Assembly: GCA_038087875.1 (NCBI GenBank)
Contig: JAXLNO010002656.1
Location: 62,001 to 121,100, forward strand
Direction: 5' to 3'
Origin: Malacoraja senta
Taxonomy: Eukaryota
Length of the DNA: 59,100 nucleotides
The notes under the pieces were generated by a model. It was not told where the DNA came from. It saw nothing but the letters and a program-made list of their open reading frames with translations, and did not search any database. The translations under genes and the position numbers were made by a program. Shown here piece by piece: positions 3,346 through 41,704 of this stretch (position 1 is its first letter; the number at the start of each line of letters is the position of its first letter).

Positions 3346-3358
3346 CAAAAGGTGGATT

Positions 3359-7610: not shown

Positions 7611-7762
7611 TCACGCTGTAGTTCAGTGACAAGTAGAGTTCTGCAGGGATCCGTGCTGTGACCCTTGCTACTTGTGACATATATAAATGACTTGGACCCT
7701 GGTGTTCAGAAATTACCCAGTCATAACAATTAATCAAATAATGATTTTTATTTTTATTTCAG

Positions 7763-8038
7763 ATTATCACGACGTTCAAGGACAGTTTGGTTGTGAGGTG
7801 AACGATCACAGTCCCACTGTAGGGATATTGAAGTTGGCTTTTGATGGAAGTTATGCATTTAGTTTTGATAAGGACAAATTAAAGTGGACGGTGCATGATC
7901 CAATAGCTGAGACCTTCAAAGAGAAATGGGACAAGAATGAAAAAATGAACCGTTATTTCAAGAGCTTGTTAGAACATGACTGTGTGGATCTATGGCTTAC
8001 ATACTATGCAATTGGAAAGACATACCTGACCAGAAAAG
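7763..8038 (+). CDS. Nonclassical MHC class I-like gene, alpha2 domain exon
   Basis: 276-nt phase-1/phase-1 exon, the canonical class I alpha2 size. Acceptor TTTTTATTTCAG| and donor AAAG|GTGAGT. Encodes DYHDVQGQFGCEV..LAFDG..KWT..AETFKEKWD..LLEHDCVD..YY..LTRK, with both cysteines (C101, C164), W133 and W147. Confidence 0.93.
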
Positions 8039-8749
8039 GTGAGTTCAGAACAAAGGATGTTGTTTTGTAATGGTAGGCAATGAGTAACATTATCTCTGAC
8101 CCAATCATGACAGAGGGAAAGGTCATTCGGCCCATTGATTCTATGCTAGTTTTCTACGCAATGTCGACAAACTGTTCCACAGCTCTCTCTCACAACTTGC
8201 ACTCAGCTCCCTTGGATACTCCTTGCATTCAGCTCCACGACGGATAATTTGCAATGTCCAACTAACTCACTGGCACGTCTTTGGTATATTGGACAAAACT
8301 GGAGCACATGGAGGAAGCCAACTGAGTCATCAGGTCATAAGTGATGGCTGCAGCATTAGAACATTCGGCCCATCAAGTCGACTTCACCAGTCAATCATGG
8401 CTGATCTATCTCTCCCTCCTAACCCCATTCTCCTGCCTTCTCCCCATAACCCCTGACCTGCATACTAATCAAGAATTAAAAATATCCATTGACGTACTCC
8501 ACAGCCTTCTGTGGCAAACAATTCCACAGAATCACCATCCTCTGACAAAATAAATTCCTCCTCATCTCTTTCCTAAAGGAATGTCCTTTAATATTGAGAC
8601 TATGATCTCTCGTCGTAGACTCTCCCACCATTGGAGACATCCTCTCCACATCCACATCTATCCAAGCCTTTCACTATTTGTTTAAAAAAATATATATATT
8701 TTTATTAGAAGCATGTGCATATCATAATACAAACATTTCTTATATATCT

Positions 8750-10810
8750 TCCTCGACGCATCCGGCAACAACATCGACGTGTACACTGACGTGGTGACGT
8801 CATACGTCCGCTACTGTGAAGAACTGTGCGTCCCCTACAAAACTGTCACAATACCCAGTAATGGAAAACCCTGGTTCAACAAGGACATACAACTTCTTCG
8901 CAAAAAGAAAAATGCAGCCTACACCAATGGAAACATTGATCAATACAAAATAGCAAAATATGAACTCAGGTCTGCAATACGGAAGGCAAAATTAGCTTAT
9001 TCAAAGAAATTGTAACAACAATTTAAAACTCATAATTCAAGAGAGGTCTGGAAAAATCTACAGAAGATGACGGACTACAAAAAAGTCCTGTTCCCATCTC
9101 AGATGAGGATCCGGACTTACCGGAAAAATTGAACACTTTTTATGCAGGCTTTGATAATGTCACCCCGCCATCCATGCCTCCCCCCCCACCTAACTCAGCA
9201 CCATTTACCATCTCTGAGGAGGTGGTGAGGGCGGCCTTCAAAAATCTTAATAAAAGAAAAGCGGCAGGGCCAGACGACCTCAGCCCCGCTGCTCTTAACC
9301 ACTGTGCAGCTCAGCTGGCTCCTGTGTTCACCTCCATCTTTAACACTTCCCTCAGCCAATGTAGAGTCCCGCAGTGTTTTAAGGCATCCATTATCATCCC
9401 TGTGCCCAAGTCCTCCAAGGTGAGCTGTCTGAACGATTTTAGACCTGTTGCACTAACATCAGTTGCCATGAAGGCCTTTGAGCACATAGTCCTCACCCAT
9501 CTGAAAACATACACTGTCCCCATCATGGACCCTTTTCAATTTGCATACAGCGCCAACCGGTCTGTGGAGGATGCTATCAACCTAGCTCTTCACTACTCCC
9601 TACATCATTTGGAATCACCGAACACTTATGCACGCATCCTGTTTATAGATTTTAGCTCGGCCTTTAATACTATACACCCAATTAAACTCTACAATAAACT
9701 GTTGGACATGGGCATTCACCTAGCCATGTGCCATTGGATTTTACATTTTCTTACAAACAGACAACAAAGAGTCAAGGTGGGTGAAAAACTCTCCAGCCCT
9801 CTGACTATCAATACAGGAGCCCCTCAAGGGTGCGTTCTGTCACCTCAGCTCTTCTCACTTTACACCAACAACCTCACATCTCAATACAGCTCAGTTAAAA
9901 TTTTCAAATATGCAGATGACACGACAATAATTGGCCTCATCTCAGACAACAATGAATCACAATACCATCAAACAGTGGACAGCGCAGTCAAATGGTGCGC
10001 AGAAAACAACCTCCAGCTTAACACCTCAAAAACCTTAGAAACCATCATAGATTTCAGACGCAAACAAAACCTCAAACCCGCGGTCCATGTCAACTCCCAT
10101 CCCATAACCTCCACGAACTTATTTAAGTTTCTGGGCACCTATATCTGCAATAATCTAAAATGGCACATCAATGCTGACCACATCATTAAGAAAGGACAAC
10201 AACGCCTATACTTCCTCAGACAGCTCAAGAAGTTCAGAGTCCACAAACACCTCCTGGTACGCTTCTATCAATCCATCATTGAAAGCATCATCACCTCCTC
10301 AATCACAGTCTGGTACGGAAACACTGACAGTCACTCACTACACAGAATACAGCGCATTGTCTCCAAGGCCTCTAGGATCATCAACTCTCCCCTCCCCTCA
10401 ATCCATTCCATTTACCTCCAACGTACCTCAAAACGGGCAACAAAGATCACCTCGGACCCCTCCCATCCAGCAAACCACCTTTTCCAGTCTCTCCCTTCAG
10501 GGTCACTTGCCTTAGGTCACTTGCTACAAAATCCACCCATTTTAAAAACAGTTTTCTTCCCCTCAGCAATAAGAACACTTAATTCCCTCCAATAACTTTT
10601 TGACTTTGATGTATACAGTGTCTTGTCTATGGTTTTTGTCTGTTCTTTTGCACTATGTATTGTTGGTGAGATTTGTGATTTGTGATGTGCTTTATTATTA
10701 TTGTTGATAGTGTTAATGTGCTAAAGCAGTACCATCATGTACCGAACCCAATTACCACCAACCCTGGTCGTGTGGCAAATAAAGTTTCTATTCTATTCTA
10801 TTCTACTTTG
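8750..10810 (+). mobile_element. Rex1/Babar-type LINE, 5'-truncated; RT ORF 9129-10595
   Basis: Motifs FRPVALTS, ARILFIDFSSAFNTI, GAPQGCVLSP and KYADD. Tail GTGGCAAATAAAGTT(TCTAT)n. Upstream piece is broken by a stop at 9013-9015. Confidence 0.92.
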
Positions 10811-10814
10811 CTAA

Positions 10815-12060
10815 TAGGTGGGAATCCAGCTATCAAAATAATAGTGGTCCTCCTTGATCAATTGTATATTAAATCTGCTTCTATTTAGTTTTGTTTTATA
10901 GATAGAAAGTGAGAAATTTAAAAAAAGGCATAATAAAGAAGAATGGAATAATTTACCAATAATACAACTTTGGAGATAAGTCCGTAAGTTATAAAACATA
11001 ACTATTCATCTAATCCTGAGCTTGGATTTCAGTCAGATTCCTGTGCTGAACCAATTTACCCTTTCAAAAAATCAATAAATAGAGACCTTATTCTATTAAA
11101 TAATTCAAGTTTGTCAATTAAGACAAGTCTAGTTCTTTCCAAATGTAAGGTCTCTGACATTTCCATAATCCACATTTTGATTGTGGGGGTTATAGGACCT
11201 TTCCAAATTTTAATATTAATTTTTTCCCAATTATTATACTATAATCAAGAAAGTTTCTTTGGTTTATTGTAAGTCTTAGGCTTTGTTCTGACATTCCTAA
11301 TATTATTAGTTTTGAGTCGGGATCCAATTGGGTATTGACTACTTCAGAAATTATTCTGAAAATGTCCTTCCAGAAATTTTTGATTTTTATACAATTTACA
11401 AAGGTATGAGTTAAATTAGCCTCTAAATGCTGGCATTTATCACAAATAGGAGAGATATGTGGGAAGATTCTATTTAATTTTGTTTAAGAATAATGTAATC
11501 TATGTGATACTTTAAATTCTATTAAGGCATGTCTGGCATTTAACGAGCATTGATGTATATATTGTAGACTTTCGTCCCAAATATCTTTCGTTATGGGTTG
11601 GCCTAATTCATTTTCCCATGTGTGTCTATATAAATCCGTCGGCGGGACCTCACTATCTAAGAGGGTATTATAAATATGAGATATTAATTTTTCTGTATTA
11701 GGATGTTTATTCAAACATTCATCAAGGATTTCTGGTTCCCTAGTTCTGTAATCTTGTGTATTTGATTTAATGTAATCTCTAATTTGTAAATATCTGAAAA
11801 AGTTATTTGAGTGTGGTCCGTAAATCTGTTGTAACCCCTGAAATTAAAGAAAAGTGCCTTTCCTATAAAGATGTCCCATCTTTTTAATTCCTTAATTTTT
11901 CCATTGTGTAAAGCCTTTATCCAACATGGAGGGTTTGAATAAAGGGTTGTTTATAATGGGGAGACAGTGATAAATTATCCAATTTTAAAGTCTTTTTTAA
12001 TTGTTTCCAAATTCGTATACCACTATATATTATAGAATTTTCACTATAGGTTTTTTAATG
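10815..12060 (-). mobile_element. Degraded L1-clade fragment (ORF2 C-terminal region); its 3' end is probably at about 8690-8750, on the other side of the Rex insertion
   Basis: ORF 11484-11714 (-) encodes HQCSLNARHALIEFKVSHRLHYS, homologous to the L1 copies at 3359-6351 and 29230-35554. Confidence 0.8.
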
Positions 12061-12094
12061 CAATTTTGTGGGAGCAAACATAATCGAACCAATT

Positions 12095-12360
12095 TCAAAA
12101 GGCAAACAGTCTTTCACTATTTTGTATGACTCAATGAGGTCCCCCCTTATTCTTCTAAACTCCAGCGAGTACAGGCCCACTGCCATCAAATGGTCATCAT
12201 ATGTTAACCCATTCATTCCTGGGATCATTCTTGTACACCTCCTCTGGACACTCTCCAGAGCCAGCACATCCTTCCTCAGATATGGTGCCCAAAATTGCTC
12301 ACAATGCTCCAAATGTGGCCTGACCGGCGCCTTATTGAGCCTCAGCATTACATCCCTGTT
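12095..12360 (-). mobile_element. CR1 (HER1-like) RT 3' fragment. Similar fragments at about 12530-12690, 22730-23300, 49500-49660, 53030-53700, 55856-56050 and 57405-57505
   Basis: Minus strand encodes VRPHLEHCEQFWAPYLRKDVLALESVQRRCTRMIPG..LYSLEFRRIRGDLIE, the CR1 RT C-terminus. Confidence 0.85.
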
Positions 12361-13684
12361 TGACAGGGAGAAAGTGTAATTGATGTATTTCATATTAGTT
12401 AACCATGGATTTTCTTGACCACAGTTGACAGCCCCTAATGGGATTGCATGTCTATCACACATCTCAAAAGAGCACAGCATTAAGCTTCGAAGGGCAAAAT
12501 TTACACGAGTTGTGCAGGTCAAGTGTTTTTTTGCACAGAGAGAGCTTGATACCTAGAATGCGCTACCAGGAGTGGTGGTAGAGGAAGACATGATAATGGT
12601 GCTTAAGAAGGTTTTGGACAGGCTTGTGAATGTGCAGCGAATACAAGGATATGGATCACATGCAGGCAGTGGAAATCAGTTTTGGTTTAGTTTAGAGATA
12701 GAGTATGGAAACAGGATCTTTGGGCCACTGAGTCTGCACTGACCAGCAATTGCCCATTCACTATTTTTGTCCTACAAGCTAGGGACAATTTACAGAAGCC
12801 AATTAACCTACAAACCTGCACGTCTTTTGTATTTGGGAGGAAACCGTAGCCCCCAGAGAAAACCCACAGGGTGACAGAGAGAACGTACAAACTCCGTCCA
12901 GACAGCACTCTAGTCAGGATCGAACCCGGGTCTCTAATGCTGTAAGACAGCCATTCTATCACTGTGCCACTGTGTTGCCTTAGTTTAACTTGGTATCCTG
13001 TTCGACATGGACATTGCAGGCTGAAAGTCCTGTTCTTGTACTGTTCTATGTTCTATATATTCTCATTGGACAGGGCAGAGTTTTTCACTCCTCCAGCCTC
13101 CATGTTGAATACTTACTCCCAGTTTAAATCTGATTCAATTAGTCAATCCATTTCTCCCCCCCCCCTCCTGCCCTGATCCCCATTCTATATCTTGAAGTAG
13201 TCATTCCCTTTTTCGCTCCCTGGTCTGTCTACTATCCCCACAACTTTCCTCTACTTTCCTGTCTTGGTGCATGCAACATCTATCCATTTACCTCTTCCCT
13301 TCCTACTGTCCATAGACCCAGGCAGTTCTTCAAAGTGAAACAGCGTGAAACACTTGCACTTCCAGTCAAATCTACTGCATTTGGTTTTCATGACGTAATC
13401 TTCCACATCGCATCAATGAAACAAATTGAGTGGCTGCGTTCTGGAGAACCTGCATTCAATCCATGGGACTTTCTAAGATTCCTAATTCCTGCCACTTTAA
13501 TTCTCCATTCAACACCCACCATGATCCATCCATCTGTACCTCTTACACTAGGATAACAAGGGTGAAAGTAACCTTGAGGACCAACAACTCAGCTTCTACC
13601 TTGACATGTTGCAGCCTTTCACACTCAATTCCACGTTCAACAAGTTGTATTCCCTGTCGATAAAAGAACTGGTCATTTCATAAG

Positions 13685-14185
13685 TTCATGTTCATTTATT
13701 GTCACATACACCAATTGGTGTAGTAAAATTCACTGGCCAGGTCAGTCATACAATTTAAAAAAGCAACAGACTCAAAAACACATTTTGACATAAACATCCA
13801 TCATAGTGACTCCTACACATTCCTCACTGTGATGGAAGGCGAAAATAAAGTTCCAAGTCCTTCCCTTGTTGTTCTTCCTTGGTCGGGGGCCTCGAGCCCC
13901 CCGTTGAACGGACGGTCTTGAGTCCCGTAGCCGGCGGCGTTCGGGCCCTCCGCGTCGAGGTGATCAGCTCCCGCATCGGGGGGATTGTCAGCTCCCTTGC
14001 GCCGGGCGATCGAACCTCGCGTCGGGGCTGGACGAACCTTCTGTGGCATTGGAGCTCCCGACTAGCCTCTCCCGAGACTGGGAGCCCTTGATGGTAAGTT
14101 CGCAGGCCGCGTTGGGAGCGATCCCAGGCAAGGGATCCGCTCCGATGGTAAGTCCACGCCCCGTGGTGGGGCTCACGACGGTCCT
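13685..14185 (-). mobile_element. Family X GC-rich non-autonomous retroposon
   Basis: Same TTTATTGTCAC tail and ACATCCA/TTCCTCACTGTGATGGAAGGC block as 2660-3345. Two GATGGTAAGT motifs at about 14090 and 14144. Confidence 0.65.
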
Positions 14186-15002
14186 TTTCAACTGTTAAGT
14201 TGAAGTCAGAAAGAACAGATGCAAGAAGTATGAAGAAGGACACCAAGCTGAAACATTACGTAACCATGTCTTCCAGATGCTGCCTGAGCCACTGAGTTAC
14301 ACCTGCACGTTTTTGTGTTTTTTTTAAATTACAGTAAAGTTATCCACCTGCAAAATCAGGACAGCCTGACCTACTTGAGTACTGCAGTATGTGCTGCATT
14401 TTATATAACTCTGTTTAGTTTCATGCATGCAGAGATGCAGTGAAATGGTTTGGATGGAACAGCAGATGCTGGACACCCCGTCCCTTCTCTCCAGAGATGC
14501 TGCCTGTCCCGCTGAGTTACTCCAGCTTTTTGTGTCTGTCTGCAGTGAAATGGTTGTTCTGCATTCTCCCCAGTCAAGTCATACTGTACATAAGTACAAT
14601 TCGTCCTCTTCTGGAACAGCACGCAGAGATCCACCACATTCCAGGACTATCTTGCAGCTTCCAAGTCTCTGAGAAGTCTGATTTTGCCCTAAGGAAATAC
14701 CCAATTTCACATTTTCTCATGTTAAGGCCCAGTGTCATAACAGCACTGGATTGATGAAGTAGAGGCGCCTGCCTCAGTTTAAGTTTTTCTGTTTCAAGAT
14801 TGTGATCAAACCCTCGTCACTGGAACTGTGTCGCAGTGCCACCCATTACGTATCAGTCCCAATTATCTTTCAACATGCTGGAATCACTTGTTTTTTATCC
14901 TTTTTAGACTTTTTTCATGAATTGTTCAGCTTAAACAGTTATGCTACAGCAGTTAAGCGCAGCTACCACTTAGTTCCAGAGACGTAACAACACAAGAGAT
15001 AG

Positions 15003-15188
15003 TGTTGGAAGAATGATCAAACTCACACATAGTGGTTAGAATCCATAGTCTTTTATTAGTAACTCTGCAGAGGAAACACAAGGTGCTTTCTTCTCAGCAT
15101 GCTTACTACCAGTCTACCAGAGAGAGAGAGAGAGAGATGTCTAATAAGCCTGTGGGCGGAGCCACAGTATGAGTGACACTAATCTACA
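15003..15188 (-). mobile_element. Solo LTR, 186 bp
   Basis: TG...CA termini, perfect 5-bp TSD GATAG (14998-15002 and 15189-15193), minus-strand AATAAA, internal (AG)n and GGGCGGAGCC box. Confidence 0.8.
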
Positions 15189-16823
15189 GATAGGCACAGG
15201 GATAAGTTTCGGTTTATTATTGTCACGTTTAGTTTCGAGGTACAGCATGAAAATAGGCCTTTTGGCCCACTGAACCTGTGCTGACTAACGACCACCCAAA
15301 TATTAGTTCTATCCTACACACTAGGGACAATTTACAGAAGCCAAAAAACTTACAAACCTGCACGTCTTTGAATGTGACGGAACTGTAGCACCCGGAGATA
15401 ACTCACATGGTCACAGGGAGAATGTATGAACTCTATATAGACAGCACCCATTGTCAGGATTGAACTTTGGTCTGTGGTACTGTAAGGCAGCAACTTTCCC
15501 TCTGCGCCACTGTGCTGCCCATGTACTGAGGTAGAGTGTAAAGCTTTGTTTTGCATGCTATCCAATTGGATGAGGTAACAAAATACATATATATGATCAT
15601 CAAACTCAAGTACTGTAGGTAGAGCAAAGGGGAAGGTACAGAGTGTGGCATGTAGTTCTCAGCAATGTAGCACAGCAGTTCCATTAGATAAGTGTTTCGA
15701 CCCGAAACGTGACACATTCCTTCTCTCCAGAGATGCTGCCTGACCCGTTGAGTTACTCTAGCATTTTGTGTCTATCTGCGGTTTAAACCAGCATCTACAG
15801 TTCCTCCCTACATAGTTCTATAAACAAAGTCCACTGTCTTTAATGGGGTAGTGGTCAATTGGACAGTACCCTAGCTTATGGAACGATCATTCAGAAGCCT
15901 GATTTTCTCCTCGGTTATTAAGTTTCCGAGTAAGCCATTTGGTCCTCTAACCTGCCCACCATTCAATATGACCATGGCTGACGTTCCTCAGGCATCAACT
16001 CCTGTTCGATATCAGTTCCTCATTGCACTCAGTTCTCCAATTTAAGTTTAATTAAGTTAACTACCGCCACATTAAATGCTTCCAATGATTTTGTCTTCAC
16101 AAATCTCTGGCGCCAGAGAATGACCACACTCTGCAAAAAGAGATTTTGTAAACAAATGACTGGTCTCTTTTATCTCTTATTGAAGAGGAGTGAAAATACT
16201 GCCAATTTTAAGCTTGTCCCCTCCCCAATTGACCCTCATTTCGTAACTTGTCAATTATTTATTATTGTCAATAATATGCCCTAGTGAAAAGATTTGCCGA
16301 TGGTATTAGTTTATTATTGTCACATGAACTGTGATATAGTCAAAAGTTTGTCTGTGTGTTATCCAATCAGATCATACTACACATGTGCAATCAAGCCATC
16401 CACAAGTAGAACAGTGCAAAGAGAAAAATTCTCAGAGTGCAGAATATCGGGTTACAATATCATAGCATTACAGTTACAGAGAAAGTGCAGATCAAAAAGA
16501 GTTGCAAGGATCACAATGAGATTGGTTGGAAGATCAGGGCAACATCTTATCTTACATGAGAACCATTCAGTAGTCCAATAACAGTGGGGAAGAAGCTGTT
16601 CCTGAATTTAATGGTACGTACTTTCAAACTTTCTTGTGCACTGTCTTAACAGGGAGCGTGCGATCCCTTTTAAACCACGTGGTTGGTTGATGGTGCCGAA
16701 AGAGGCAAAATGGGGCAGATGTGGACAGTGACTTGGTTGTTGTAGTGGACTGAAGAATATTTTGTGGTGGGTGACTGTGCAAGTTTTACTGAAGATGAAA
16801 ATAACCATCTTACTGTCTTGTAG

Positions 16824-17090
16824 TTTCCCCTGAGGTCACTCTCGCTGCCCGCCCTGATGATCATTCAGTCCTGTACTGCACTGTGTTTGGATTTTACCCA
16901 CCGGCCATCAATGTCAGCTGGTTGCAGAATGGTCAACATGTCTCTGAGACCAAATCTTCTGGGGTCATACCCAACAACGATGGAACATATCATCTAAGGT
17001 CTGTCCTTGAGTATGATCCGTATGATGGGAAACAGTATTCCTGTCATGTCGATCACAGCAGCCTGCCCGGTGGGAAGACCATCATCTGGG
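16824..17090 (+). CDS. Nonclassical MHC class I-like gene, alpha3 (Ig C1-set) exon
   Basis: 267-nt phase-1/phase-1 exon with acceptor CTTACTGTCTTGTAG| and donor TGGG|GTAAGA. Encodes VSPEVTL..LYCTVFGFYPPAINVSW..IPNNDGTYH..YSCHVDHSSL..IIW. In frame with the alpha2 exon. Confidence 0.94.
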
Positions 17091-17429
17091 GTAAGAACGT
17101 TAAATATTCTTTCATAGATAATCATTATCTTCTGTTGTTTCCATTTTAATCATCATGAATACATCCCATATTCCAAGATGCTTAAACTTTCTTTGTTTAG
17201 TGGTGTTGCTCTAAGTAATCACGTAATCAGCACCCACTCTCTGCATGAGCAGAAGACTTTGTCAACAGAACATTTATCAAAAGTAAATAAATAACTAATA
17301 TATAAGGAAGGAGTATTTGAGATTCTCAGTGGTGGAACTGAAATCTATGAAAGGTATGTTTAAATAAAAAATGAATCTTTCCTCATGATGTGATTAACAA
17401 CAAGGCACTGGGGGAGTACATGCCCCAAT

Positions 17430-18125
17430 CTGAATCAATGGTCCGAAGTGGAAATGATTGAGAGCTTCATGTTCCTTGGCATGAATTTATCCAATATTCT
17501 GTAAAGGACTGACCACATAGCCAAGGAGGCACACCAACACCTCTACTTCCTCAGGAGACTGAGAATATTCATCATGTCTCTGGTGACTCTAGCAAACATC
17601 TATAGATGCCGCTAGAGAAAGCATGTTGTTGGGTTGCATCACATCTTGATTTGGGAACTGCACTGCCCAAGACTGCAAGAATATACAAAGAGTTAAAGAT
17701 CATCACACAGGCCAGACTTCCCACTATTGGCTCAATCTACACTAGGTTGCCTTGGAAAACGAGACTTATCCCAACCTTCCTCCTTCTTGCTCCCATCAGG
17801 CATTAGGTACAGAAAGTTGAAAATATGCACTGCCAGACTCAGGAACACCCCCTTTCCACCTGTTAACAGGCTTCGGAAGGGTCCTTCCATAATGTAGGTT
17901 TAATGCCCGATTCACCTCAACCTCATTGAACATTGAACATTGTCCATGGAACTGATGTGTTACAATGCTGAGAACTATATTCTGTACTCTGTATCCTCCT
18001 CTTTGCTCTATCTATTGTTTTTGAGTTTGTATTTATGTATAGTTTTATAATTTGTTTGGATAGCATACAAAACAAACTTTGCTCATATTTTGAAACATCT
18101 GGCGTTAATAAAACTAAACCTAATG
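17430..18125 (+). mobile_element. Highly decayed Rex/L2-type LINE 3' fragment
   Basis: Degenerate SFMFLG / HLYFLRRL homology to 9129-10595 and an AATAAAACTAAA tail near 18107. Confidence 0.55.
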
Positions 18126-19780
18126 AAGTAAGTTCCATGACGCAAGTTACAGATTCAGCAACGAATAATATAACTGCCTGACAAACAGCGATCGTAGAAG
18201 TTTGATTCCAAGTATGCTGCACTAACCTACACAAATGCTCACTTTTGAAGATTCCCTCGAACAATGCACAACTAAGGAATCTGATGTTTCACTCTGAAGA
18301 CTGTTGACATACCCCAGAACTTAATTTCCAACCTATCTATGTATCATCAGCAATCTAGGCTACAGCGCCACCAGTCCCTTCATCTGCTCTTAATACCAAC
18401 GATAAGTAGTTCACTTTCTTGCATTGATTCCCAACCTGCAGTTGCAGTTTCCCAACCAGAACACTCCTTTAAGACAACTCTCTGCTTGCTCTTAATTGTT
18501 TTTCCATTCATGCTAATTATTACCCCCAATGTCATAAGCCATGTGCCTTTGCATCACTTGATCAGATATCTTATGAAAATCCAGATATTGTGGCGACATC
18601 TGGTGGTCAGGCCACTTATTGCTAGAACCCTCGTCAGGGGAGCTGGGACTATCACGTGAGTGACAGGGTTTTGGTGGGAGTTGGTGATGAGTTAATCGCC
18701 AGTCAACTGGTGTGCCCGATAACAACGGCAGGAACTTTGCTCAAGTCCTTACTAAACGCGAGTGGGCCAAAACTGTATTTCTTTAAAAAAAACATTGATT
18801 TGTTCACGACGTTTGGATCTCTACAATATATTGTATTTCTTTTGTTTCTCATTCCAATTTTGTTACCTATTCTGCTTTTCCATCATTTTGTTTATGAATT
18901 TTAGGCTTTTCACACCTGCTGCTCGAATATACATTGTCTACGGGTTCCTGTTGCATTTTCAAAGAGTTCTAATCAATTTCTCAAACAAAGTTTGAAGAAG
19001 GGTCCCAAAACGAAACGTCACCTGTCCATGTGTAAGAAGAAACTGCAAATGCTGGTTTACACCAAAGATGGACACAAATTGCTGGAATAACTCAGCTGGT
19101 CAGCCAGCATCTCTGGAGAAAAGGAATAGGTGATGAATCCATGTTCGCCAGAGATGCTGCCTGTTCCGCTGAGTTACTCCAGCATTTTGTGTCTATTATG
19201 TATATTCTTTCCACTGACTGGTTAGCATGAAACAAAAGCTTTTCACTGTACCTCAATACATGTGACAATAAACTAAACTAAAGCTTTTGTGTAAATCAGT
19301 ATCTGCATCTCTTTCTTTCTACAATTTTCCTGATAATGCCCTGATAATGCACTTTATTGTTTTGTTATTACTTAAATGTTCTGCCATTATTGAAAGGAAT
19401 CCAGCATTTTCCCCAAAACAAATGTTAGTTTATATAGGGTTAAAGCTTTCTGCTTTCAATTCACCTTCTTTCATGAATTAAGTTGTGGCTGTGATGGTGC
19501 CATATATCATAGAGTTGTACAGAACATATATTGTCCCTTTGCCATGCTGCAGAACTCCGTGATTCAAAACACCATATCATCTTATATACCTTGAAAAGCC
19601 CCAAATATAGACACAAAATGCTGGAGTAACTCAGCGGTCAGGTAACATCTCTGGAGAAAAGGAATAGGTGGCATTTCGGGTCGAGACCCTTCTTCACCCT
19701 GAAGTCTTCAGACAGTGCCCATCTATTTAGCTGCACAGCTTAACAATTGATTTGTAAAATTATGCATTCTTATTTTTCAG

Positions 19781-19888
19781 AAGGAAATAGGAAGAAAGAC
19801 AGGCACATAGGCCTTATTGCCGTGTGTGTGCTGATATTGCTGGCTATTGTCTTGGCAGTAATTGTTTTGTGGAGAAAAAAGAGGAGAG
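19781..19888 (+). CDS. Nonclassical MHC class I-like gene, connecting peptide/transmembrane exon
   Basis: 108-nt phase-1/phase-1 exon with acceptor TTCTTATTTTTCAG| and donor AGAG|GTAAGA. Encodes EGNRKKDRH-IGLIAVCVLILLAIVLAVIVLW-RKKRR: a 22-aa hydrophobic helix and a basic stop-transfer. Confidence 0.87.
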
Positions 19889-20815: not shown

Positions 20816-23447
20816 ACTCAGTAGCTGCCACCAAGGCCGCTGTTGCTGGAAGACTCTATGTTTCTATGACTCAAAATTAAGTGGGAATGTGAGTAGTGGG
20901 AGAAATGGTTCAATGTGGAAAGTCGAATGAATGAGCAACAACATGACAGGTGGACTACAATGTGAAACAGGGCAGCACAGAGCCAGAGACCTGAATTAAA
21001 TACCGACATCGGCTGTTGTATCTGTAGAGTTTGCATGTTGTTCCTGTGACCATGTGGGTTTCCCCAGGTGCTCTGGTTTCCTCCCACATCCCCAAAACAT
21101 TGTTTGGTAGGTTAGTTGTCCCCTAGATTGTGCATGATACAATGTGGGGAGAGCTGATGAGAATGTGGGACAAATATAGGATTAGTGTACATGAATGGTT
21201 GGTGCAGGTCAGTGGGACAAAGGCCATGTTTGTATGCTGCATATTTCCATGACTCTTTATGATGTAGAAAGATGTTGACTATTTTTGATTTATAAGATTG
21301 GGAAAGACTGTGAGGGACAGTGCTAGAGTAACTCAGCAGGTCAGGCAACATCCCTGGAGACCATGGATAGGTGACAATCTGGTTCGAGACTCTTCAGGCA
21401 AATTACAATGGGTATTCCTCCGCTTAAGTCTGATAGTAGTGTACAGATGCACCTCAACCACTGACTTGCTCAACAAGTGCTTAAATTAGTTGAATTAAAG
21501 TATGTTTGGAGTAACATGCAGCAGTCCTTAAAATCTACCATTTCCCAAATCCCAAGAGAGCTGGATGATCAGGGTTTTAGTGTAAATTCAAAGTCATCTA
21601 TATCACTGATTTCTTGCCTGTGATCACACTGTTGTAAGATATATTCTGGTGATGAATTGCAGTTCACTTTCCTCCTGTGTAAAGGAGTTATTGTGTTGAA
21701 TATAACAAGTGGAGGGAAAGTCAGTGTAGGATTTAGAGTTTGTACGTAATGCAGCATGGTAGTGCAGCTGGTAGAACTGCTGCCTCACAACGCCAGAGAC
21801 CCAGATTCAATCTGGACCTCGGGTACTGTCTACGTGGAGTTTGCATGTTCTCCTTGTGACTATGTGGGCTTCCTCAGGGAGCTCCGGTTTCCTCCCATAT
21901 CCCAAAGATGAGCAGGTGTGCAGGTAATCATCCTCGGTAAGTCACCCTGATAGTGTAGGGGGTGGATGGGAAATCTATTATGAATGGGTGATTGCTGGTT
22001 AGTATGGATTTGGTGGCACAAATGGCCTGTTTACACACTGTATCTGTTTTCAAGAGAGAGTTAGATTTAGCTCTTAGGGCTAAGGGATTCAAGGGATATG
22101 GGGAAACAGCCAGATCGGAGTATTAATTTTGGATGATCAGCCATGATTGTATTGAATGGCGGTGCTGGCTCAAAGGGCCGAATAGCCTATTCCTGCACCT
22201 ATTTTTTTATGTTTCTATCTTTCTATTAAATAAACTAAATTGGAAGACAGAAGGTATTTACTGATGCATCTTCACACCAGCTGTAAATGTCATCAACTGT
22301 GAGAATTGATTGCAAATGTTATACAATATTATAAACTAAACTGGGTGATCAAAATGACAAGATGGATGAAGAGCAGAGTTTTCATTGAAATAACAGACGT
22401 GCAGCTTTCTCGAGCACTTGGCCTTGGTTGTGTAATATTTCCTCTTCAAAATACAATGTTCCCTGGCATTTCTGGTCTGAGGCACCATTCAGCAAGTATA
22501 TTTCCTGAAACGGAGGTTCTGCTTTCATGGTATCAAGATGTCCAACAGCTCCAGCACCCAGATCAGAACCTTGCCAAAACTAAGAATGCAGCAACAATTT
22601 AGTCATTGAACATCAACGACATGCATATTTGAACTGAGGCAATGGTTAGCTTATTATCACTGTAAACCAGTCGTGGTCATGGGTCTGCCATTGTGGTCAC
22701 TATTAGTGAGGGTGATTAACTATCATGTAGCAGTGAAACGGAAAAGAATTGGCTTTTCAAGCCCACGGAGCCATAGAGTCATACGGCATGGAAATGGCCA
22801 CCTCAACTTGGCCATGTCAACCAAGATGCCATGTTTAAACTACAATTTACCTGCAATTGACCCATATCTCACTGAACCTTTCCTATCTACAGTATGTACC
22901 TGTCCAAGTGTGTTCTAAATGTTTTTTAATACCTGCCTCAACTCCTTCCGCTGGAATGTTCTTCCATATTTCCACTTCCTCTGGTTCCGAGTAACTCGTT
23001 TCCTTCTCACCTTAAACCTAAGTCCTCTGGTTCTTGATTACACAAGGCTGGTTAAAAGATTCCGTGCATTCAATCTATCTATGCTCCTTGATTTTATAAA
23101 CTTCTATAAGATCACCCCTCAGCCTCTTGCGTGCCAAGGACTAAAGTCCAAGCATTCTCATCCTCTCCCTGAATCACAGGCCCTGTTAATGACATCCTTC
23201 CGATAGTGGAGTGACCAAAACTTAACACATTACTCCAAATGTGACCTCACCAACATCTTGTACAACTGTAGCAGAACATCCCAACTTTTTTATTCAGTAC
23301 CTTTCTTTTAAAATCTTTTTATTGTTTTTTTTCAAAAAAACAAAAACAAAAATAAAACATAAAAAACAGAGCAAAAAGAATAATGATAAACATAACAATG
23401 GTATTGATACATAGGGATCATGATTACATTAATAACAGGTATAAACT

Positions 23448-26400
23448 AATAGTAAGATTAAACGAGAACTTACCTAAGTTTGAAGTTTGATCTTTATTTT
23501 ATGAGGAGTTACGTAGGTGATTACGTGAAGAACCCCGCCAGTGCGCCAATCTTCAAAGCAGCGGTGTGAAATCACAAAAAACAACAACCGAAGTAATATA
23601 GTCTCATAATAAAACGAGTAATACAAGAACTTCAATCTGACCTTTATGATAGAGGGTAGGGTCATGGCGGGCACGTAATCACCTACGTAACTCCTCATAA
23701 AATAAAGATCAAACTTCAAACTTAGGTAAGTTCTCGTTTAATCTTACTATTTTACTTCGGAGTCACGTGAGTTACTACGTGAAGATTTTAAAGCTTTGTG
23801 ATTTCATGCCGTAGATCAACCCCGGCTTCTCACTGCATAGATTGACTCGGAACGAGAATAATCAATCATGCATTCATAATAACATTTGTACCACAAATGC
23901 AGTCATTCATTTCAATAATGAAATTAATCAGATCCCCTTTAAACCAGAGGAATTTACACAGAACTTAAAATAGTTTCTGCACACAATCCCGCATTAACAA
24001 TAGGCCGATGGTAAAAATGTTGAAACATCAACTCATTGGACCATCGGCGGCTGCGAGGATATGGTCGACGAGGACGTCTTATGCCCTGGCCGCCGACATT
24101 TCTGCTGCCCTAGGCGAGTGAGACGTAAAAACATAAGTGTTAATATCAGCAGCTGTTATGACTTCTTTTATCCATCAGGAAATAGTCTGTATTGAAACTC
24201 TCTTGTGTGGTTTCTTGTGTGTGATTAACAACCCAGTTTCCGTATTTCTTAAATGCTTTGTGACCTCAATGCATTGTCACAAATATGTCTTAACACAGAG
24301 ACAAGGATCATTTGGATATGCTGCTAGCATAATTTTAAATCCTGTCACACCTGGCCTAATTTGCTTTAATAGGTCATAGATATAGAATGTAACCTTGTCT
24401 TCAGTTACTTCCATAGTATCTATTTGTAATTTTCTAAGTGTTTGCACTCGTTGTGCAGTCACTCATGCCATAAGCATGAATACTTTCATCCTGAGCTTGA
24501 CCAAAGGTAAAGACACACTTGGTGACCATTCACGAAGTAGTTTCAGTACCACACTTACATCCCAGATTGTCATGTACCTAGGTTTCGGTGGTTTGGAATT
24601 AAAGATTCCTTTCATTAGTCTGGAAAGAATTGGGTGTGACCCAATTGGGTTTATTTCTGAATCCAGAACCAAATATGAGGGCAATGCACTTATGGCTGAA
24701 TTAATTGCACTACAACTCAGACCTTCATCATAATAGAGTTTTGACAGATTTTCTAAACATTTGAAATATCTGCAGTACTATATTGCAAATTCTTTTGTAC
24801 ACAGAACTTTTCCCATTTCTTAATATAAGAAAGGTACTGTTTTTGGAGTGCTCTTCCTCCAGGCTGCCGTAAGCATGTCCACAGTACGCTCAGACAGTCC
24901 TCGCCCCAGAAAAGGCCTTCTTAAACCTGCAAATCAACAAATCCAAACAATCATTAGATTAGATAGATTAGATTAGATAGCCCTTTATTGTCATTCAGAC
25001 CGAAGTCTGAACGAAATTGCAACAGTCATACATAAAACAACAATAAACACATATTAACATCCACCACAGTGAGTCCACCCAACATCTCCTCACTGTGATG
25101 GAGGCAAAAGTCTTAGGTCTGCAGTCTCTTCCCTCCTCTTCTCCCTCTGCGCTGAGGCGATACCCCCCGGGCGATGTTTCCCGCGGCTCAAACACCGCGG
25201 CCCGGGGTGGTCGATATAATGGATGTTGTTTCCCTGTTACAGGGTGCAGCAATATATTACTCCTTTTGGGGACTTTCATCAACATTTGTGTTGTTAATTC
25301 TAATATCAACAGATACCATGGCTGTGTAGGCCAATCTGGTATTACCAATACACCTGAATCAGCATTTTGCCTGACTTTAAGCAAACACTGGCTTATAAGG
25401 CAGAAAAGTGGAAATATATATGACAACATATCACTCCAATGTAGCGAGAAAGAATCAATCGCCACTGCTCCTGGATCTGATTCACATGAGACATATCTCG
25501 ATAGCTGATGATTCAGCCTAGATATAAACAAGTCAATGTTGGGCATTCCAAATCTGATTACTATATCATTGAATACCTCTCGATTCAACATCCATTCTTA
25601 TTATCATGGAACTTTCGTGACCTGGTGTCTGCTATCGTGTTCATTCTACCTGGTAGATAGATAGCTGAAATCCAAATATTCTTTTCAATACACCCAGTCC
25701 AAAGTTGATTAGCCATTTTGTCACATGACCCTGACTTGATTTCATCCATATCATTAATATAGGCAATTGCTGTTGTGTTTATCAATCTGAACTTGGACAT
25801 GCCTTTTAGTTGTGTTAGAACAATAACCTTGGAGTCCATAGAAACATCCTAAAACTCCAAATAGTTAACTCCCCATGTCTGCAGTAACAATGACTCTTCC
25901 TGATTCCATCTGCCTCCGCAGCTAGATGCTAAGTCAGTTTCACCCCATCCTAGTGTACTGGCATCTGTTTGTAATATCATGGAAGGTTTGTTCAATCAGC
26001 ACTCTGCTGGAACTGCTTGAGACATGTAGAATCCACCACTGCAGATCAGAAACAGCATTTGTTGTCAGTTGCATGGTTCTATCAAAATGACCAACATGCA
26101 TTTTCAGTGCCTGTTCTTTAACTCTCTGCAGCTGTTGATAATGTAATGGTCCGAATTGGACTGCTGGGAATGCTGCTACTAATTTTCCCAGTACTCAAGC
26201 CACCTGTCTGATTGAGGGGTTTTGCTCGTTTACCAGATTACTGCAATCTTTAATCAACTCCACCCTTTTTTCACTGGGCAAAGTAATTTTCATTTGGACT
26301 GAATCAATTGTGAACCCCAAATAATCAATCGAGGTACATGGTGTTAACCTTGATTCCTTTGGATGAATTAGAAACCCCAAACTTTCAAAAGTTGATTTCA

Positions 26401-28467
26401 CAACTGCCACAGATGCTTCTGTTGACTGTTTTGTCCTTCCTATTATCAGCACATCATCCAAAATATGCCACTAGTACATGCCCCTGGCTTCTTAGCAACC
26501 CCAGAACTGGTTTTAATAATTTTGTGAATATTCTGGGAGCGGACGTTAACCCATTAGGCAAAGCTTTGAACTGCCATAACTGGTTCATCCATGTAAATTT
26601 AAGATACTGAATATGTATCTTTTAAATTTATAGTTGCCATATGACATGCTTCTGAAATAAGTTGTTTGGCAGTCACAAATATCTCTTTTAAAATGTTTAA
26701 ATTAAACAAAAGGATTCAGACTTGTCAAGTCTAGAATAATCCCACATCCTCAATCCTTTTTTGATCGATGGAATATATTTAACACAAATTGGTGAATTTG
26801 GTAGACTGATTCTTCAATAACACATTTTATATATAGGGTTTGAAACGCAGCTTGAACCTCCATCACTTCTTTTTGTGCAAACCATATGACAATTACAGCA
26901 GGAAAACAGGCCATCTCGGCCTTTCAAGTCCATGCCGAAGAAGTGGAGAATTCTGCTAGGAACATGCTGGACAGGCAAATCATAATTTGGATTGAATTCA
27001 ATTCGAAATCCTTGTATACTATTCAGAATTACCACATCTGAAGTAATCTTCCAATTGTTTATAGAAGAGACATAATCTGCCGCCAACTTTTGGACTTAAT
27101 CCAGTTAGTATGTTCCCATGAGAACCAGGTCCACCTACCTCTTGAGTCATTTGAGTACTCTGAGATTCCTGGATTCTCCCGGAAGCACCCTCACTGGTTC
27201 TTGCTCCCGCTGCAGGCCGCCAGCTACGTCCCTGCGTTAATGTGCGACTTGGTCCTGTCCAGGATCCGTATGACATCTGAAAGGATATTCCTCTTTACAG
27301 ACTTTTCAACCATTGATGTTTTCATCAATCCTGTTTTCGCTTCATCTTCCAACTCTTTAACACATCTCTCGAGATCCTCTCCAAAGAGTAAGTTGGGTAA
27401 TTGTACATTACTTGGTTTGCAGAGTGCTGCGAATTTCGGATTCATAATAGGCCGTATAGCACCTTTCCTCGGACAATTGATCTCGAAGTGGGTGCTGCAT
27501 AGCAACCCCAGTGCTTTCTGATGCAACTCCGTCATCTCTTGGCTTTTATCCGCTATTCTGGCAAAGCAGTTATTCCAGCAGCTTTAATATTCTCTGCCAT
27601 TTCAATTCTTGAGTTCTCATAATCATACTCAACTCATATTTTCTTGCATTCTCATTCATTTCCTGCTGTTCCAGCTGATGGGAAACCAAGTAATTTATTA
27701 GGGAGGCCAATTCTCTTCTAATGGCTCTCCTGACTCTGACGGGGCAGCGAATCATACTGCCAGGGGTGGAACATCTGTACATCACGTACATCACGGCTAC
27801 TGTGACAAATCACATAGAGCCTCACCGTCAGAATCAGGGTCTGAAATCTCATGACCCGTGGCACGCTCCTCATCCCTGAGGGTGCATTCTATCAGCCCTG
27901 AACCAGGAGCTGTTGAGCTGCTTCCAGCAGCTTGGTTTTCAGTACACTCTTACCTGAGTGTGCTTTGCTCCAACAGCCTATGTAGCAGGCTTTCCATTTG
28001 GGCAATACGCTTTAAAAGCAGTATCTAGCCCTGGAGCTTCCATTTCCTGGGACTCCTCCTCCGTGGCCCGTTTCAATTCGGACTTGGCCTTGCGCCCGAC
28101 AGGCGTTGACTGCCCCAGGTCCACAGTCGCTATGCTCACCGCTGACGACTGTACCGGGGTTAGAGGCGGTTGGTCGCTACCCGCAGACTCCCGACTTTCC
28201 CGACTTTCTGTCGGCTGTGTCGCTCGCCTCTTCCCCCTGCCTGTTTTTTCCCATGGCATCTGTGGAAGAAATCCCCACAGACCCACAGTAAACGGACATG
28301 AAAAAATACTAAAAAAGTTTTTACTTACCTTGTAGTTAAAAAACTACAAATCCACTGAGGAGCTCTGCTCCTCATGTCCGTTTGCGACAAGGCGTATGAC
28401 GTAATGACGCGCAGGCGCACTGGCGGGGTTCTTCACATAGTCACTCACGTGATTCCGAAGTAAAATA
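23448..28467 (-). mobile_element. DIRS1-type tyrosine-recombinase retrotransposon, copy 1 (complete ends, degenerate ORFs: gag, RT/RNaseH/MT, YR)
   Basis: ITR 23525-23547 / 28414-28436. ICR 23672-23785 matches the joined 3' and 5' termini. RT (PNGLTSAPRIFTK, DDVLI), MT (IDLFISRLNHQL..YIFPLF) and YR remnants (SHSPRAAEMS, AADGPMS). Confidence 0.93.
24956..25213 (-). mobile_element. 5'-truncated family X retroposon inserted at the pol/YR boundary of DIRS copy 1
   Basis: (CTAAT)n-type tail and shared ACATCCACCACAGTGAGTC..CTCACTGTGATGGA block. Removing it restores HPLYNDCLDLLICR, compared with HPLHNRIGLLICR in copy 2. Confidence 0.8.
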
Positions 28468-29412
28468 TGAGACCAGTGTCAAAATACACAATGAATATAG
28501 ACCTCTCCATCTCTATGTAAATATAGTTAAATCTTTAAAAGGAAACATAAATGTAAAAAAAAAGCAAAGATAAAAAGACAAAAAGAAAAAGAAAAAACAA
28601 AACCCCCCTAAACTAAAAAAAAATTAAAAAAATTGGATAATAATAAAATAAGAATAAAAATAAAATAAATAAATAAAACAAAACAGAGCAAAACCGAATC
28701 TGAACTGAGAAATTCAACAATTTACGTCTGTTTGTCGTCAAGTCCGTTCCACCCTATGAAGGTAAAATAATTTTTATAAAGGTTAAAGAGGGAACAATTT
28801 ATGTTGTATGAAAGTGTTCAATAAATTTTCCCCAAACTTATCAAATTGAACCAAGGGTTCAACAATGTCACTTCTGATTTTTTCTAAATTTAAACATGAT
28901 ATCGTTTCAGAATACCACTGGAGTGTGGTCGGAGGGTTGGAATCTTTCCATTTAATGAAAATAAATCTTCTGGCAATTAATGTGGTAAAAGCAATCAACC
29001 GATGGGCGGAGTGGGACAAATGAATAGAATCTAACATTGGTAACCCAAAAATTGCAGTAATAGGATGAGGTTGTAAATCTATACCTAAGACTACCGAAAT
29101 AGTATCAAAAATTTATTTCCAATATTTTTCCAAAAGAGGGCAGGACCAAAACATATGGGTCAGTGATGCCACTTCAGAGTTACATCTGTCACAGGTAGGA
29201 TTTATATGACCGTAAAAACGAGCTAACTTGACTTCCGGTGGCGCTATGGAGGCTTGAGTCCAGTACCAACTAGCTCCATGCCGAAGAATCTGAAAACGGG
29301 AGAAAATCGGGTCTTACCTGCAGCGATCGCGATCTGAACGGCTGCCTGCCGCGTGACGTCATCAGGCGCGCGACTTTGACGGTATGTCGACGCAACATAC
29401 CCCCCCCCCTGT

Positions 29413-30441
29413 GTGCCAAAAAAAACCGTTAAAGGGAAACCACCGATGGAAGAGGTAGGCCTAACTGAGGCCTCGGCCTCAGGTACAATGACGGCCCAGG
29501 AAGACCCAACGAAGAAATCAAAGCAGAAAAAGTCTGAAATTGAAGATCTTAAAACTTTTCTCGCTGTTGAAATTAAACAGATTCAACTACAGTTGAAAAC
29601 CTTTGAAGGAAAATTGAATTTTAAAGAGGAACTTAACTCTTTTAAGGTAGATTTTAAAGCAGAAATGCTTTCTACCGTTCAAGAAATACTGGAAGTCTGG
29701 AAGAGGTCCAGGGACGATGAGGTCAAGGAACAGATGGAAGTGCTGGAAGCCAGGTTCGTTTCGGTGGAATCGAACGCTAATATGGAGGTGGTCCCCATTC
29801 ATCAAGCACTTGATCAACATAGAACAGCGATAACCGAACTTGAGAAATGGGCGGCGACAAGTGAGGAAACTGTAAATCGACTCCTTATTGAAAACCAACG
29901 CCTCTCCGGTATGGTGATCAAATTAAGTGATAAGTGTACCGATTTGGAGGGGCGTCAAAGACGCAAGAATTTAAGAATTGTAGGGGTGAAAGAAGGAAGT
30001 GAGAGGGAAATGGGCCCTCGGGATTTTGTGGCAGACCTACTACAAAAAGCCTTAAAATTGGATCAAAAACCTTCACTCGGTCGAGCACATAGAGCGCAGG
30101 GGCGTCGTACACAAGATGATGCCCATCCAAGACAAATTATAGTAAAGGTGCAACTTGATCATGAATTTGACGAGATAATGAAGAAAATCGTCCGAAGCGG
30201 ACAGCTCTATTTTGAAGGTGCGAGGTTCAGTATTTACCGAGATTATCCGGCAGAGGTCTTCAAGAAAAGAGCACTGTTCACTGAGACAAAAAGAATACTG
30301 AAGAAGGTACCTGATTTGAGATACGGCTTGCTTTACCCCGCAAGACTAAGAGTCACCTACAAGCAGAAGGAGCAATTTTTTACAGACCATGAAAAAGCAC
30401 TGGAATATGCCAAAGAAATCGGGAACGTGACCACAGACTGA
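29413..30441 (+). CDS. L1 ORF1 (coiled coil + RRM + CTD; first in-frame ATG at 29446)
   Basis: Uninterrupted 342 codons with DLEGRQRRKNLRIVGVKE, RAHR, PRQIIVK and YPARLRV, typical of L1 ORF1p. Confidence 0.9.
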   Translation: MPKKTVKGKPPMEEVGLTEASASGTMTAQEDPTKKSKQKKSEIEDLKTFLAVEIKQIQLQLKTFEGKLNFKEELNSFKVDFKAEMLSTVQEILEVWKRSRDDEVKEQMEVLEARFVSVESNANMEVVPIHQALDQHRTAITELEKWAATSEETVNRLLIENQRLSGMVIKLSDKCTDLEGRQRRKNLRIVGVKEGSEREMGPRDFVADLLQKALKLDQKPSLGRAHRAQGRRTQDDAHPRQIIVKVQLDHEFDEIMKKIVRSGQLYFEGARFSIYRDYPAEVFKKRALFTETKRILKKVPDLRYGLLYPARLRVTYKQKEQFFTDHEKALEYAKEIGNVTTD

Positions 30442-31397
30442 AGAATTTACATTACTCCTCAGGAGTCAAGGATTAACGGGACTTCACCAGATTTAAAAGG
30501 ACCTTTAAAGTTCTTTTAAGAGCTTTAAGGACATTCGAAAACCGAAATGGACGGTGGACATTGGAGAAAACCGTGTTTTTTTTTGTGTTTTTTTTAAATC
30601 TTTTTTTATTTTTAGTATAAACTTTAAGAACAATAATATCATAGTTGTGACCAATTGTTATTAATCACTATTACTATTTAGTATATTCATATCTAACTAT
30701 ATATGTAACTGCTAATACTTATTAAATATCTATATTACTACTAAAATTATTAACATTTATATTACTCATAAAAATTTAATACTGGGTATGATCGATAACA
30801 ATGATTAATAACTAACAATCTCTGGTTAACGTAGAAATGAGTTACATACTTATATTCTACAGGAAGATGTGCAAGAGGTAATTCAGCCTACGTCATAATA
30901 AGGTTTGACGGTTTTTCTCTTTATTTTTCAATTTAAAATTAAATTTATAGATTTAGCGAAGATATATATATGTATATATGTATGTATGTGTGTGTGTATG
31001 TATGGGTATATATATATGTTTGCTACTCCCAAAGAAGTTAATTGATTGTCAGAAATATTCTTTCTTTTTTTTTTTGGGCACGGAGCTGGGAATTTTTTTT
31101 TTACAAAGGCTACGGAAGTCTTTAGAATTCTAGCCACGTTAGTGTGGCTATCACTAACTACACTAATTGTAGATGTAGTTTTTTTTCTTTCACCCTATAC
31201 TAACCAATTCTATCACTTTTTTCACTTTAAATATTTTTATAACTTAATGTTTGAATGGAACAACAAGACTAATTCAAGGAGATGTGTTCGGAAGAGCGAT
31301 GTATATGATTTTAAATTCATCTATTCGAGGTTCGGGAGCAGGGTCAGGTTTTATGTGTTGCACCTTCTGCTCGGTTATAGACCACCTTAGAAACAAT

Positions 31398-41663: not shown

Positions 41664-41704
41664 ATTATCAAAATATTCAACCAAAGCAGAACGTGCACTG
41701 CTAA
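41664..41704 (+). CDS. Probable terminal cytoplasmic-tail exon of the MHC class I-like gene: (D)YQNIQPKQNVHC*
   Basis: Strong acceptor TTTCTTTGTTGTCTAATATTTAATTTCCCTCCTCAG| with a CTAAT branch-point candidate. Phase 1 matches the TM donor. Contains a YxxI motif, TAA at 41702-41704 and AATAAA at 41756-41761, in non-repetitive sequence. The splice junction is inferred, not observed. Confidence 0.58.

Follow-up and report, generated by a model that had tools for sequence, protein, structure and literature searches.

Last four coding exons of a probable UGA-lineage non-classical MHC class I gene in the skate Malacoraja senta

The stretch of DNA analysed here, called the window, is 59,100 nucleotides (nt) long and is taken from contig JAXLNO010002656.1 of the Malacoraja senta assembly GCA_038087875.1 (positions 62,001 to 121,100 of the forward strand). 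On its forward strand lie four coding exons of a gene of the major histocompatibility complex (MHC) class I superfamily. The exon for the alpha2 domain (7763..8038, 276 nt, phase 1, full codons 7765-8037) can be read directly between the acceptor tttcag and the donor gtgagt, and the same is true for the exon of alpha3, an immunoglobulin (Ig) C1-set domain (16824..17090, 267 nt, phase 1, acceptor ttgtag, donor gtaaga). A third exon of 108 nt (19781..19888, phase 1, acceptor ttttcag, donor gtaaga) encodes the connecting peptide, the transmembrane helix and a basic RKKRR stop-transfer sequence. The last coding exon (41664..41704), again read directly, aligns to the tail exon of the skate Amblyraja radiata and ends with the tail D-Y-Q-N-I-Q-P-K-Q-N-V-H-C and a TAA stop; 52 nt past the stop codon, an AATAAA motif (41756..41761, forward strand) is a candidate polyadenylation signal. 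In all four visible exons the reading frames are open and the splice sites canonical, and the split codons of the three phase-1 exons (alpha2, alpha3 and transmembrane) join without a break, with phases as in class I genes. In a Pfam search the alpha2 translation matches MHC_I (4e-13) and the alpha3 translation C1-set (3e-20), scores that are far beyond chance, and both conserved disulfide pairs (C101/C164 and the alpha3 pair) are present in the translation. An alpha2 platform and a membrane-proximal C1-set domain are thus found on separate phase-1 exons, which is what defines the MHC class I superfamily. A first-pass annotation, made from the letters of the window, had described three in-frame exons with class I sizes and phases, and the direct read returns the same coordinates, phase and splice sites. 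These three exons were placed exactly, but the span that it gave ends at the transmembrane exon, while the gene continues to the tail exon at 41664-41704.

The tail exon carries a YxxI sorting motif (DYQNI), and when the tails of relatives are compared, those that are complete, from rays, skates and three sharks, have a Y-x-x-I/V motif. The tail of human CD1b likewise contains YQNI.

When the alpha2 exon is compared with all sequences in the PDB, residues 90-179 of 9ch4_A come first (E 6e-33), the next group being MR1 at ~1e-12, and 9ch4_A is also the top match of the alpha3 exon (E 8e-35). The record 9CH4, released on 2026-03-18, has the title 'Crystal structure of shark nonclassical MHC CLASS I, UGA', and because this title gives UGA, the name can be taken as verified. 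As estimated from the printed alignment, the 9ch4 chain is ~88% identical to the homolog of Stegostoma tigrinum, and its source is therefore an orectolobiform shark. An AlphaFold model of the A. radiata ortholog (mean predicted local distance difference test score, pLDDT, of 86) likewise has 9ch4_A as its first match in a Foldseek search of the PDB, with template modelling (TM) scores of 0.91/0.94, a root-mean-square deviation of 1.8 Å and 58% identity. An exhaustive phmmer search over 1.84 billion representatives gives only three clusters below 1e-30, after which matches fall to 39% identity. A further search, seeded with the top phmmer match, finds homologs in skates, sawfish, rays and six shark genera, all of them automatically named, for example 'F10 alpha chain-like' or 'MR1-like'.

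A tree was built from 65 rows comprising UGA, its sister lineage and other class I sequences, by a quick search with supports from the Shimodaira-Hasegawa-like approximate likelihood ratio test (SH-aLRT) and without bootstrap. The gene in the window is placed in a subclade of skates (SH-aLRT 100) within a 26-row UGA clade (SH-aLRT 100). The sister clade of UGA (SH-aLRT 97) is another conserved lineage of elasmobranchs, with the proteins P0014 of Leucoraja erinacea and P0192 of S. tigrinum as representatives.

Among skates, the protein in the window is 93.5% identical to XP_032898133.1 of A. radiata, 90.7% to L. erinacea and ~88% to Rhinoraja longicauda. At the nucleotide level the alpha2 exon is 96.0% and the transmembrane exon 97.2% identical to A. 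radiata, and positions 6441-53001 of the window are collinear with the A. radiata locus through the introns and the 3' flank (mean 89.6% nt identity, range 85-94%); for Rhinoraja the nt identity is 86.5-87%. The RefSeq models of these skates, namely XP_032898133.1 of A. radiata, XP_055521885.1 of L. erinacea and ten of R. longicauda, are orthologs or co-orthologs named 'class I histocompatibility antigen, F10 alpha chain-like', and these automatic names hide the UGA identity. No identical protein was found among the protein collections searched, so the copy of the window's own species is absent from them.

Very probably, the four exons in the window (alpha2, alpha3, transmembrane and tail) are the final coding exons of a skate gene that belongs to UGA, a non-classical class I lineage found in sharks, rays and skates. 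Direct observations of this analysis are the exon structure, the orthology with A. radiata, the position in one clade with the crystallised shark UGA, the hydrophobic alpha2 half-groove shared across the lineage and the YxxI tail. The gene adds one further skate UGA ortholog to a kind of gene that is already known and whose structure is already solved. The first-pass annotation had called a non-classical class I gene and could not assign it to a lineage. The call holds, with the anchors T143, Y159, Y123 and W167 lost and the gene nested in the UGA clade, and the match to 9CH4, the tree and the collinearity with A. radiata now supply the lineage. It had also proposed a phylogeny with elasmobranch lineages, which is the tree given above, and a structure model, for which the modelled A. 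radiata ortholog, with 9ch4_A as its best fold match, stands in.

The residues of the groove were compared in an alignment of the window, UGA members, the sister lineage, peptide-type class I of sharks and fish, and an MR1. HLA numbering was anchored on the landmarks C101, W133, W147 and C164. As in MR1, the 102-118 loop of the alpha2 domain in the window is shorter by one residue and the stretch between 147 and 164 longer by one, so that the numbering of positions 150-156 is uncertain by one residue. With this numbering the window carries V95, G97, F99, L114, L116, Y122, A123, F143, K146, W147, M152, F156, L159, L167 and Y171. Non-polar residues occupy 14 of the 21 alpha2 groove positions (mean Kyte-Doolittle value +1.18), against 6-10 of 21 in peptide-type class I (-0.2 to -1.0) and 10 of 21 in MR1 (-0.20). 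Lineage-wide in UGA are G97, F99, L114, L/F116, A/I123, F143, M152, F156, L159, L160 and L167, a hydrophobic alpha2 half-groove along with which K146, W147 and Y171 are retained. This conservation of groove residues extends from skates to hexanchiform and heterodontiform sharks, and the window keeps every lineage-conserved one. Private to the alpha2 domain of the window are D3, S29 (R in nearly all other UGA), T50 and L78 (N/R/K/H elsewhere).

Because the groove residues are conserved across skates and sharks, a role in ligand binding can be argued. It has to be set against the idea that UGA presents no ligand at all and serves as a receptor or regulator in the manner of FcRn, HFE or ZAG. Both ZAG and HFE stand high in a fold search of Swiss-Prot, which reflects general class I fold similarity only, while conservation of the groove lining over the whole elasmobranch lineage argues for a ligand, and the tyrosine sorting tail together with the transmembrane anchor fits antigen-presenting trafficking. 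We give this idea almost no credence.

The pattern by which classical molecules hold the termini of a peptide is broken in the window, with F instead of T143, L instead of both Y159 and W167, and A instead of Y123; K146, W147 and Y171 are kept. The same four replacements, with the same three residues kept, had been read by eye in the first-pass annotation, and the alignment reproduces them and finds them lineage-wide. The nearly all-hydrophobic alpha2 groove that it described is borne out by the counts above, and the Y in place of D122 recurs in the alignment. Its remark that the CD8 loop is not acidic fares less well: the CD loop of alpha3 (the CD8 loop) has one acidic residue in the window and 1-2 in peptide-type class I of sharks and fish, so it is a weak discriminator. 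As a marker of non-classical genes a non-acidic CD8 loop is uninformative, as fish peptide-type class I is similar.

The alpha1 domain can be judged in the orthologs only. There it keeps Y/F7, Y59 and R/K/Q84, and 6-9 of its 22 groove positions are non-polar, which does not exceed peptide-type class I; in the sister lineage the count is 13-14 of 22. To judge by the aligned residues, the UGA groove looks asymmetric, with a greasy alpha2 side and a classical-looking alpha1 side. An alpha1 domain with Y7/Y59/R84 and a polar groove had been named beforehand as what would overturn the non-classical, hydrophobic reading, and half of this is seen in the orthologs. Nearly all UGA sequences have a cysteine at residue 30 of the mature alpha1 chain (motif L-D-G-C-E-I), which neither the sister lineage nor the peptide-type lineages share and for which alpha1 offers no obvious partner.

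Comparison with the crystallised shark UGA (9CH4) shows how close the skate gene is. Identity is ~60-65% in alpha2 and alpha3, as taken from printed alignments, and F99, L114, F143, K146, W147, M152, Y155-F156, L159-L160, L167 and Y171 are identical. The differences in the groove are conservative (window vs shark: V95 vs L, L116 vs F, A123 vs I, W168 vs L). The tails of sharks are short, with xYNxI/V, whereas that of the window (DYQNI...) is longer, and the gene in the window differs further in being a skate (batoid) ortholog with very large introns. Classical shark class I (UAA, PDB 6LUP) has the same fold (TM score 0.87), exon plan and phases; in contrast to UAA, UGA lacks T143, Y159, Y123 and W167, and its alpha2 groove is far more hydrophobic.

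On the function of UGA, two publications turned up in literature searches. A 2023 paper (PMC10751288) mentions an unpublished CD1-like lineage of elasmobranch non-classical class I (MHC-Ib) genes, called UFA, that maps in an MHC-Ib cluster. A 2025 review (PMC12562908) describes UFA and UGA, by personal communication, as CD1-like, MHC-linked and single- or low-copy, and adds, again by personal communication, that a crystal structure and mass spectrometry suggest that UFA/UGA bind lipids comparable to those of human CD1d. The primary UGA/9CH4 paper was not found in these searches, and the supplements of the 2023 paper in Molecular Biology and Evolution contain no genes labelled UFA or UGA. Lipid presentation is the best-supported function of UGA. 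The first-pass suggestion that the gene may present lipids or other hydrophobic ligands is in line with the CD1d-like lipids reported for UGA in the personal communication of PMC12562908.

The way in which such a molecule might work can be outlined as follows. The heavy chain would pair with beta2-microglobulin as a type I membrane protein, and the YQNI tail would route it through endosomes, as in CD1b-d. UGA may load a lipid or another amphipathic ligand and would display it to T cells. In the groove, the acyl part would lie along the greasy alpha2 side, and the retained R/K84-K146-W147-Y7-Y59 set would be close to the polar or anionic head. In classical molecules the R/K84-K146-W147 set holds the carboxylate of the peptide; we speculate that in UGA it may grip an anionic lipid head group instead.

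The same residues are open to a different reading, in which Y7, Y59, R/K84, K146, W147 and Y171 would serve to present something other than a lipid, either a small metabolite in the style of MR1 or a peptide of a specialised kind, hydrophobic or lipidated. Three points would suit a non-lipid ligand: of the nine residues that bind peptide termini in classical molecules, six are retained; apart from UGA itself, no group comes closer by sequence and fold than MR1 and classical class I; and the alpha1 side is not hydrophobic. However, the Schiff-base lysine of MR1, K43, aligns with a T in UGA, the replacement of T143, Y159, Y123 and W167 by F, L, A and L runs throughout the lineage, and the review (PMC12562908) reports lipids by mass spectrometry. 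A non-lipid ligand therefore appears quite improbable, and lipid presentation is kept as the preferred function.

The relationship to the known presenters of lipids and metabolites can be stated more firmly. With the CD1 of mammals, birds and reptiles UGA shares a hydrophobic groove, reported lipid ligands (PMC12562908) and a YxxI/V endosomal tail; it differs in retaining the C101-C164 disulfide and many class I anchors. Membership of the CD1 family was considered and rejected, as alpha2 reaches 20 bits with the CD1-type Pfam family MHC_I_3, below its cut-off of 35 bits, and the full ortholog has no match to this family. Nor is there a case for CD1 orthology: no CD1 is found among the top 50 PDB fold matches of the A. 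radiata model, and in the Swiss-Prot fold search CD1c is 22nd (TM score 0.79, 22% identity), after chicken class I, MR1, ZAG and HFE. MR1 is the nearest tetrapod protein by sequence (alpha2 E 1e-12) and has the same alpha2 indel pattern. It differs from UGA in K43, which is T in UGA, and in the equivalents of R94 and W156, which are G and L there, and membership of MR1, for which the Schiff-base lysine K43 and the aromatic cradle were the criteria, was rejected on the ortholog alignment. UGA is CD1-like in function on the published account and belongs to neither the CD1 nor the MR1 family; by sequence and fold, MR1 and classical class I are closer to it than CD1 is.

The sister lineage (P0014 of L. 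erinacea, P0192 of S. tigrinum) shares with UGA the motifs 'AGFHG..KG' in the alpha1 helix and 'MNKYFK.LLEKDC' in the alpha2 helix, with an identity to UGA of only 36-43%. In its proteins P0014 and P0186-P0196 both sides of the groove are hydrophobic (alpha1 13-14 of 22, alpha2 12-13 of 21), and the lineage also differs from UGA in keeping D122, in lacking the YxxI tail and in having a longer linker in front of alpha3. This lineage may correspond to the published UFA; no source was found that names it so. The same proteins (P0014, P0186-P0196) have sub-threshold matches to MHC_I_3.

No older candidates for lipid presentation by MHC-like molecules are known than UGA and its sister lineage, and both are relevant to the question of whether CD1-type function dates back to the first jawed vertebrates. 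In the gene in the window, the hydrophobic alpha2 half-groove, K146/W147/Y171 and the tyrosine sorting tail are seen to hold across batoids. The gene leaves existing knowledge of the lineage unchanged. The asymmetric groove and an apparently raised UGA copy number in skates, discussed below, could both be of interest to specialists.

The 5' half of the gene lies outside the window. No leader or alpha1 exon was found in a six-frame scan of positions 1-7800, and tblastn with seven full-length relatives (E 10, word size 2) gave no match to leader or alpha1 anywhere in the window; upstream of alpha2, the window is filled with open reading frames (ORFs) of reverse transcriptases. The orthologous gene of A. 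radiata (XP_032898133.1, P0167) spans 77.7 kb, and on its locus (L001) the leader exon is at 10001-10102, alpha1 at 41880-42143, alpha2 at 53464-53739, alpha3 at 74156-74422, the transmembrane exon at 80755-80862 and the tail exon at 87708-87748. In A. radiata, alpha1 is thus found 11.3 kb and the leader 43 kb upstream of alpha2, whereas the window offers only 7.76 kb. Since the loci are collinear and the gap between alpha1 and alpha2 is longer than the sequence available, alpha1 is expected just past the 5' end of the window. The leader and alpha1 exons are off-window, and nothing indicates their absence.

Compared with A. radiata, the gene has 9 synonymous and 18 non-synonymous changes, giving a ratio of non-synonymous to synonymous rates (dN/dS) of 0.51 overall. 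By exon the ratio is 0.38 in alpha2 and 0.43 in alpha3, and in the transmembrane and tail exons it is 1.4 on 6 changes. Constraint on the gene is moderate, on small counts.

Sequencing runs give some information on expression. Two of them, X1 and X2, are DNA, apparently from the window's own species, and their intron contigs match without differences. A third, X22, is of RNA type, with zero depth over unique intron stretches, including the flanks of alpha3. Its contigs match alpha3 at 99.5-100% and end at 16822/16824 and 17090, and a 585-nt contig matches 19810-19888 and then departs from the genome sequence exactly at the 19888 donor. Because the X22 contigs end at exon borders, the predicted splice sites are supported. 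By word content X22 holds 13% of the alpha2 words and 68% of the alpha3 words, and no sequencing run examined contains all alpha2 or all alpha3 words. Contig word depths disagreed between runs, and no copy number was drawn from depth.

Whether this copy is alive has to be weighed against the possibility that it is a dead or silent paralog whose exons are open only because duplication or inactivation was recent. That would fit with alpha1 and leader exons that lie outside the window, with UGA being multicopy in another skate, with an overall dN/dS that is only moderate and reaches 1.4 in the transmembrane and tail exons, and with the few alpha2 words in the RNA-type run. It fits less well with four open exons with canonical splice sites, with a locus that is collinear with a single annotated A. 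radiata gene, as expected of an ortholog, with the retention of every lineage-conserved groove residue, and with a dN/dS below 0.5 in both extracellular domains. Taken together, a dead copy is unlikely, and a constrained UGA ortholog remains the preferred reading. Several points nevertheless weigh against a working, lipid-presenting UGA gene at this locus. The claim of lipid binding rests on a personal communication in a review; the alpha1 domain of the orthologs retains its classical residues and is not unusually hydrophobic; the leader and alpha1 exons lie outside the window, and the integrity of this copy is judged from its four visible exons; the dN/dS is based on just 27 substitutions; and X22 bears the label of another species and has few alpha2 words, so that the transcript may be that of an ortholog or a paralog and not of this copy.

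It is worth adding that UGA may have expanded in skates. R. longicauda has at least ten near-identical UGA gene models (P0151, P0177-P0185), four of which (L002-L005) were located at 26.43, 38.52, 39.67 and 41.36 Mb of chromosome CM130181.1, each 30-35 kb long. L. erinacea has at least two UGA loci. On its contig JAMYXN010000384.1 a second UGA locus (P0170) and the UGA-sister gene (P0014) are found on the same strand, ~42 kb apart (L006, L007), so the two greasy-groove lineages are tandem neighbours in this species. Variation among the skate UGA copies is slight and mostly outside the groove. The copies in Rhinoraja and L. erinacea suggest that the UGA copy number of skates is not low, which conflicts with the description 'single- or low-copy' in PMC12562908. 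As a tentative proposal, for which the chances seem somewhat short of even, UGA may have become a dispersed multigene family in skates, with the gene in the window as one constrained member of an expansion of a lipid-presenting lineage, loosely parallel to mammalian CD1a-e. This possible expansion is the only part of the analysis that goes beyond the existing record. In alpha3, the window has six states in common with the Rhinoraja copies and not with Amblyraja/Leucoraja, a mosaic that may stem from gene conversion or from lineage sorting.

Some RefSeq isoforms of L. erinacea (XP_055521880-83; P0165, P0166, P0168 and P0155) fuse UGA exons to a GPR139-like seven-transmembrane gene. Neither the window nor the A. 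radiata locus contains this gene, and the fusion is probably a read-through artefact of annotation.

The remainder of the locus is rich in transposons. In the intron between alpha2 and alpha3, an insertion of the long interspersed nuclear element (LINE) type occupies 8700..12100 on the forward strand; its ORF at 9129-10592 matches Pfam RVT_1 (6e-33), and the segment is without counterpart in the collinear A. radiata or Rhinoraja loci. The last intron contains ~17 kb of transposon insertions (23303..40503), with endonuclease and reverse-transcriptase ORFs at 31251-34198. They inflate this intron to 21.8 kb, and the collinearity with all five related loci is interrupted between 23303 and 40503. 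Because of such reverse-transcriptase elements the introns are inflated, and the distance from alpha2 to the tail is 34 kb in the window against ~11.6 kb in Rhinoraja. Long open reverse-transcriptase ORFs are found at 3612-4688, 9129-10592 and 31251-34198 on the forward strand and at 56215-57384 on the reverse strand; one is preceded by an endonuclease ORF, and two have an ALKBH8_N-like segment after the reverse-transcriptase domain. A further ORF at 44248-45141 on the reverse strand has weak phage-integrase/SAM-like matches, which fits the tyrosine recombinase of a DIRS-type element.

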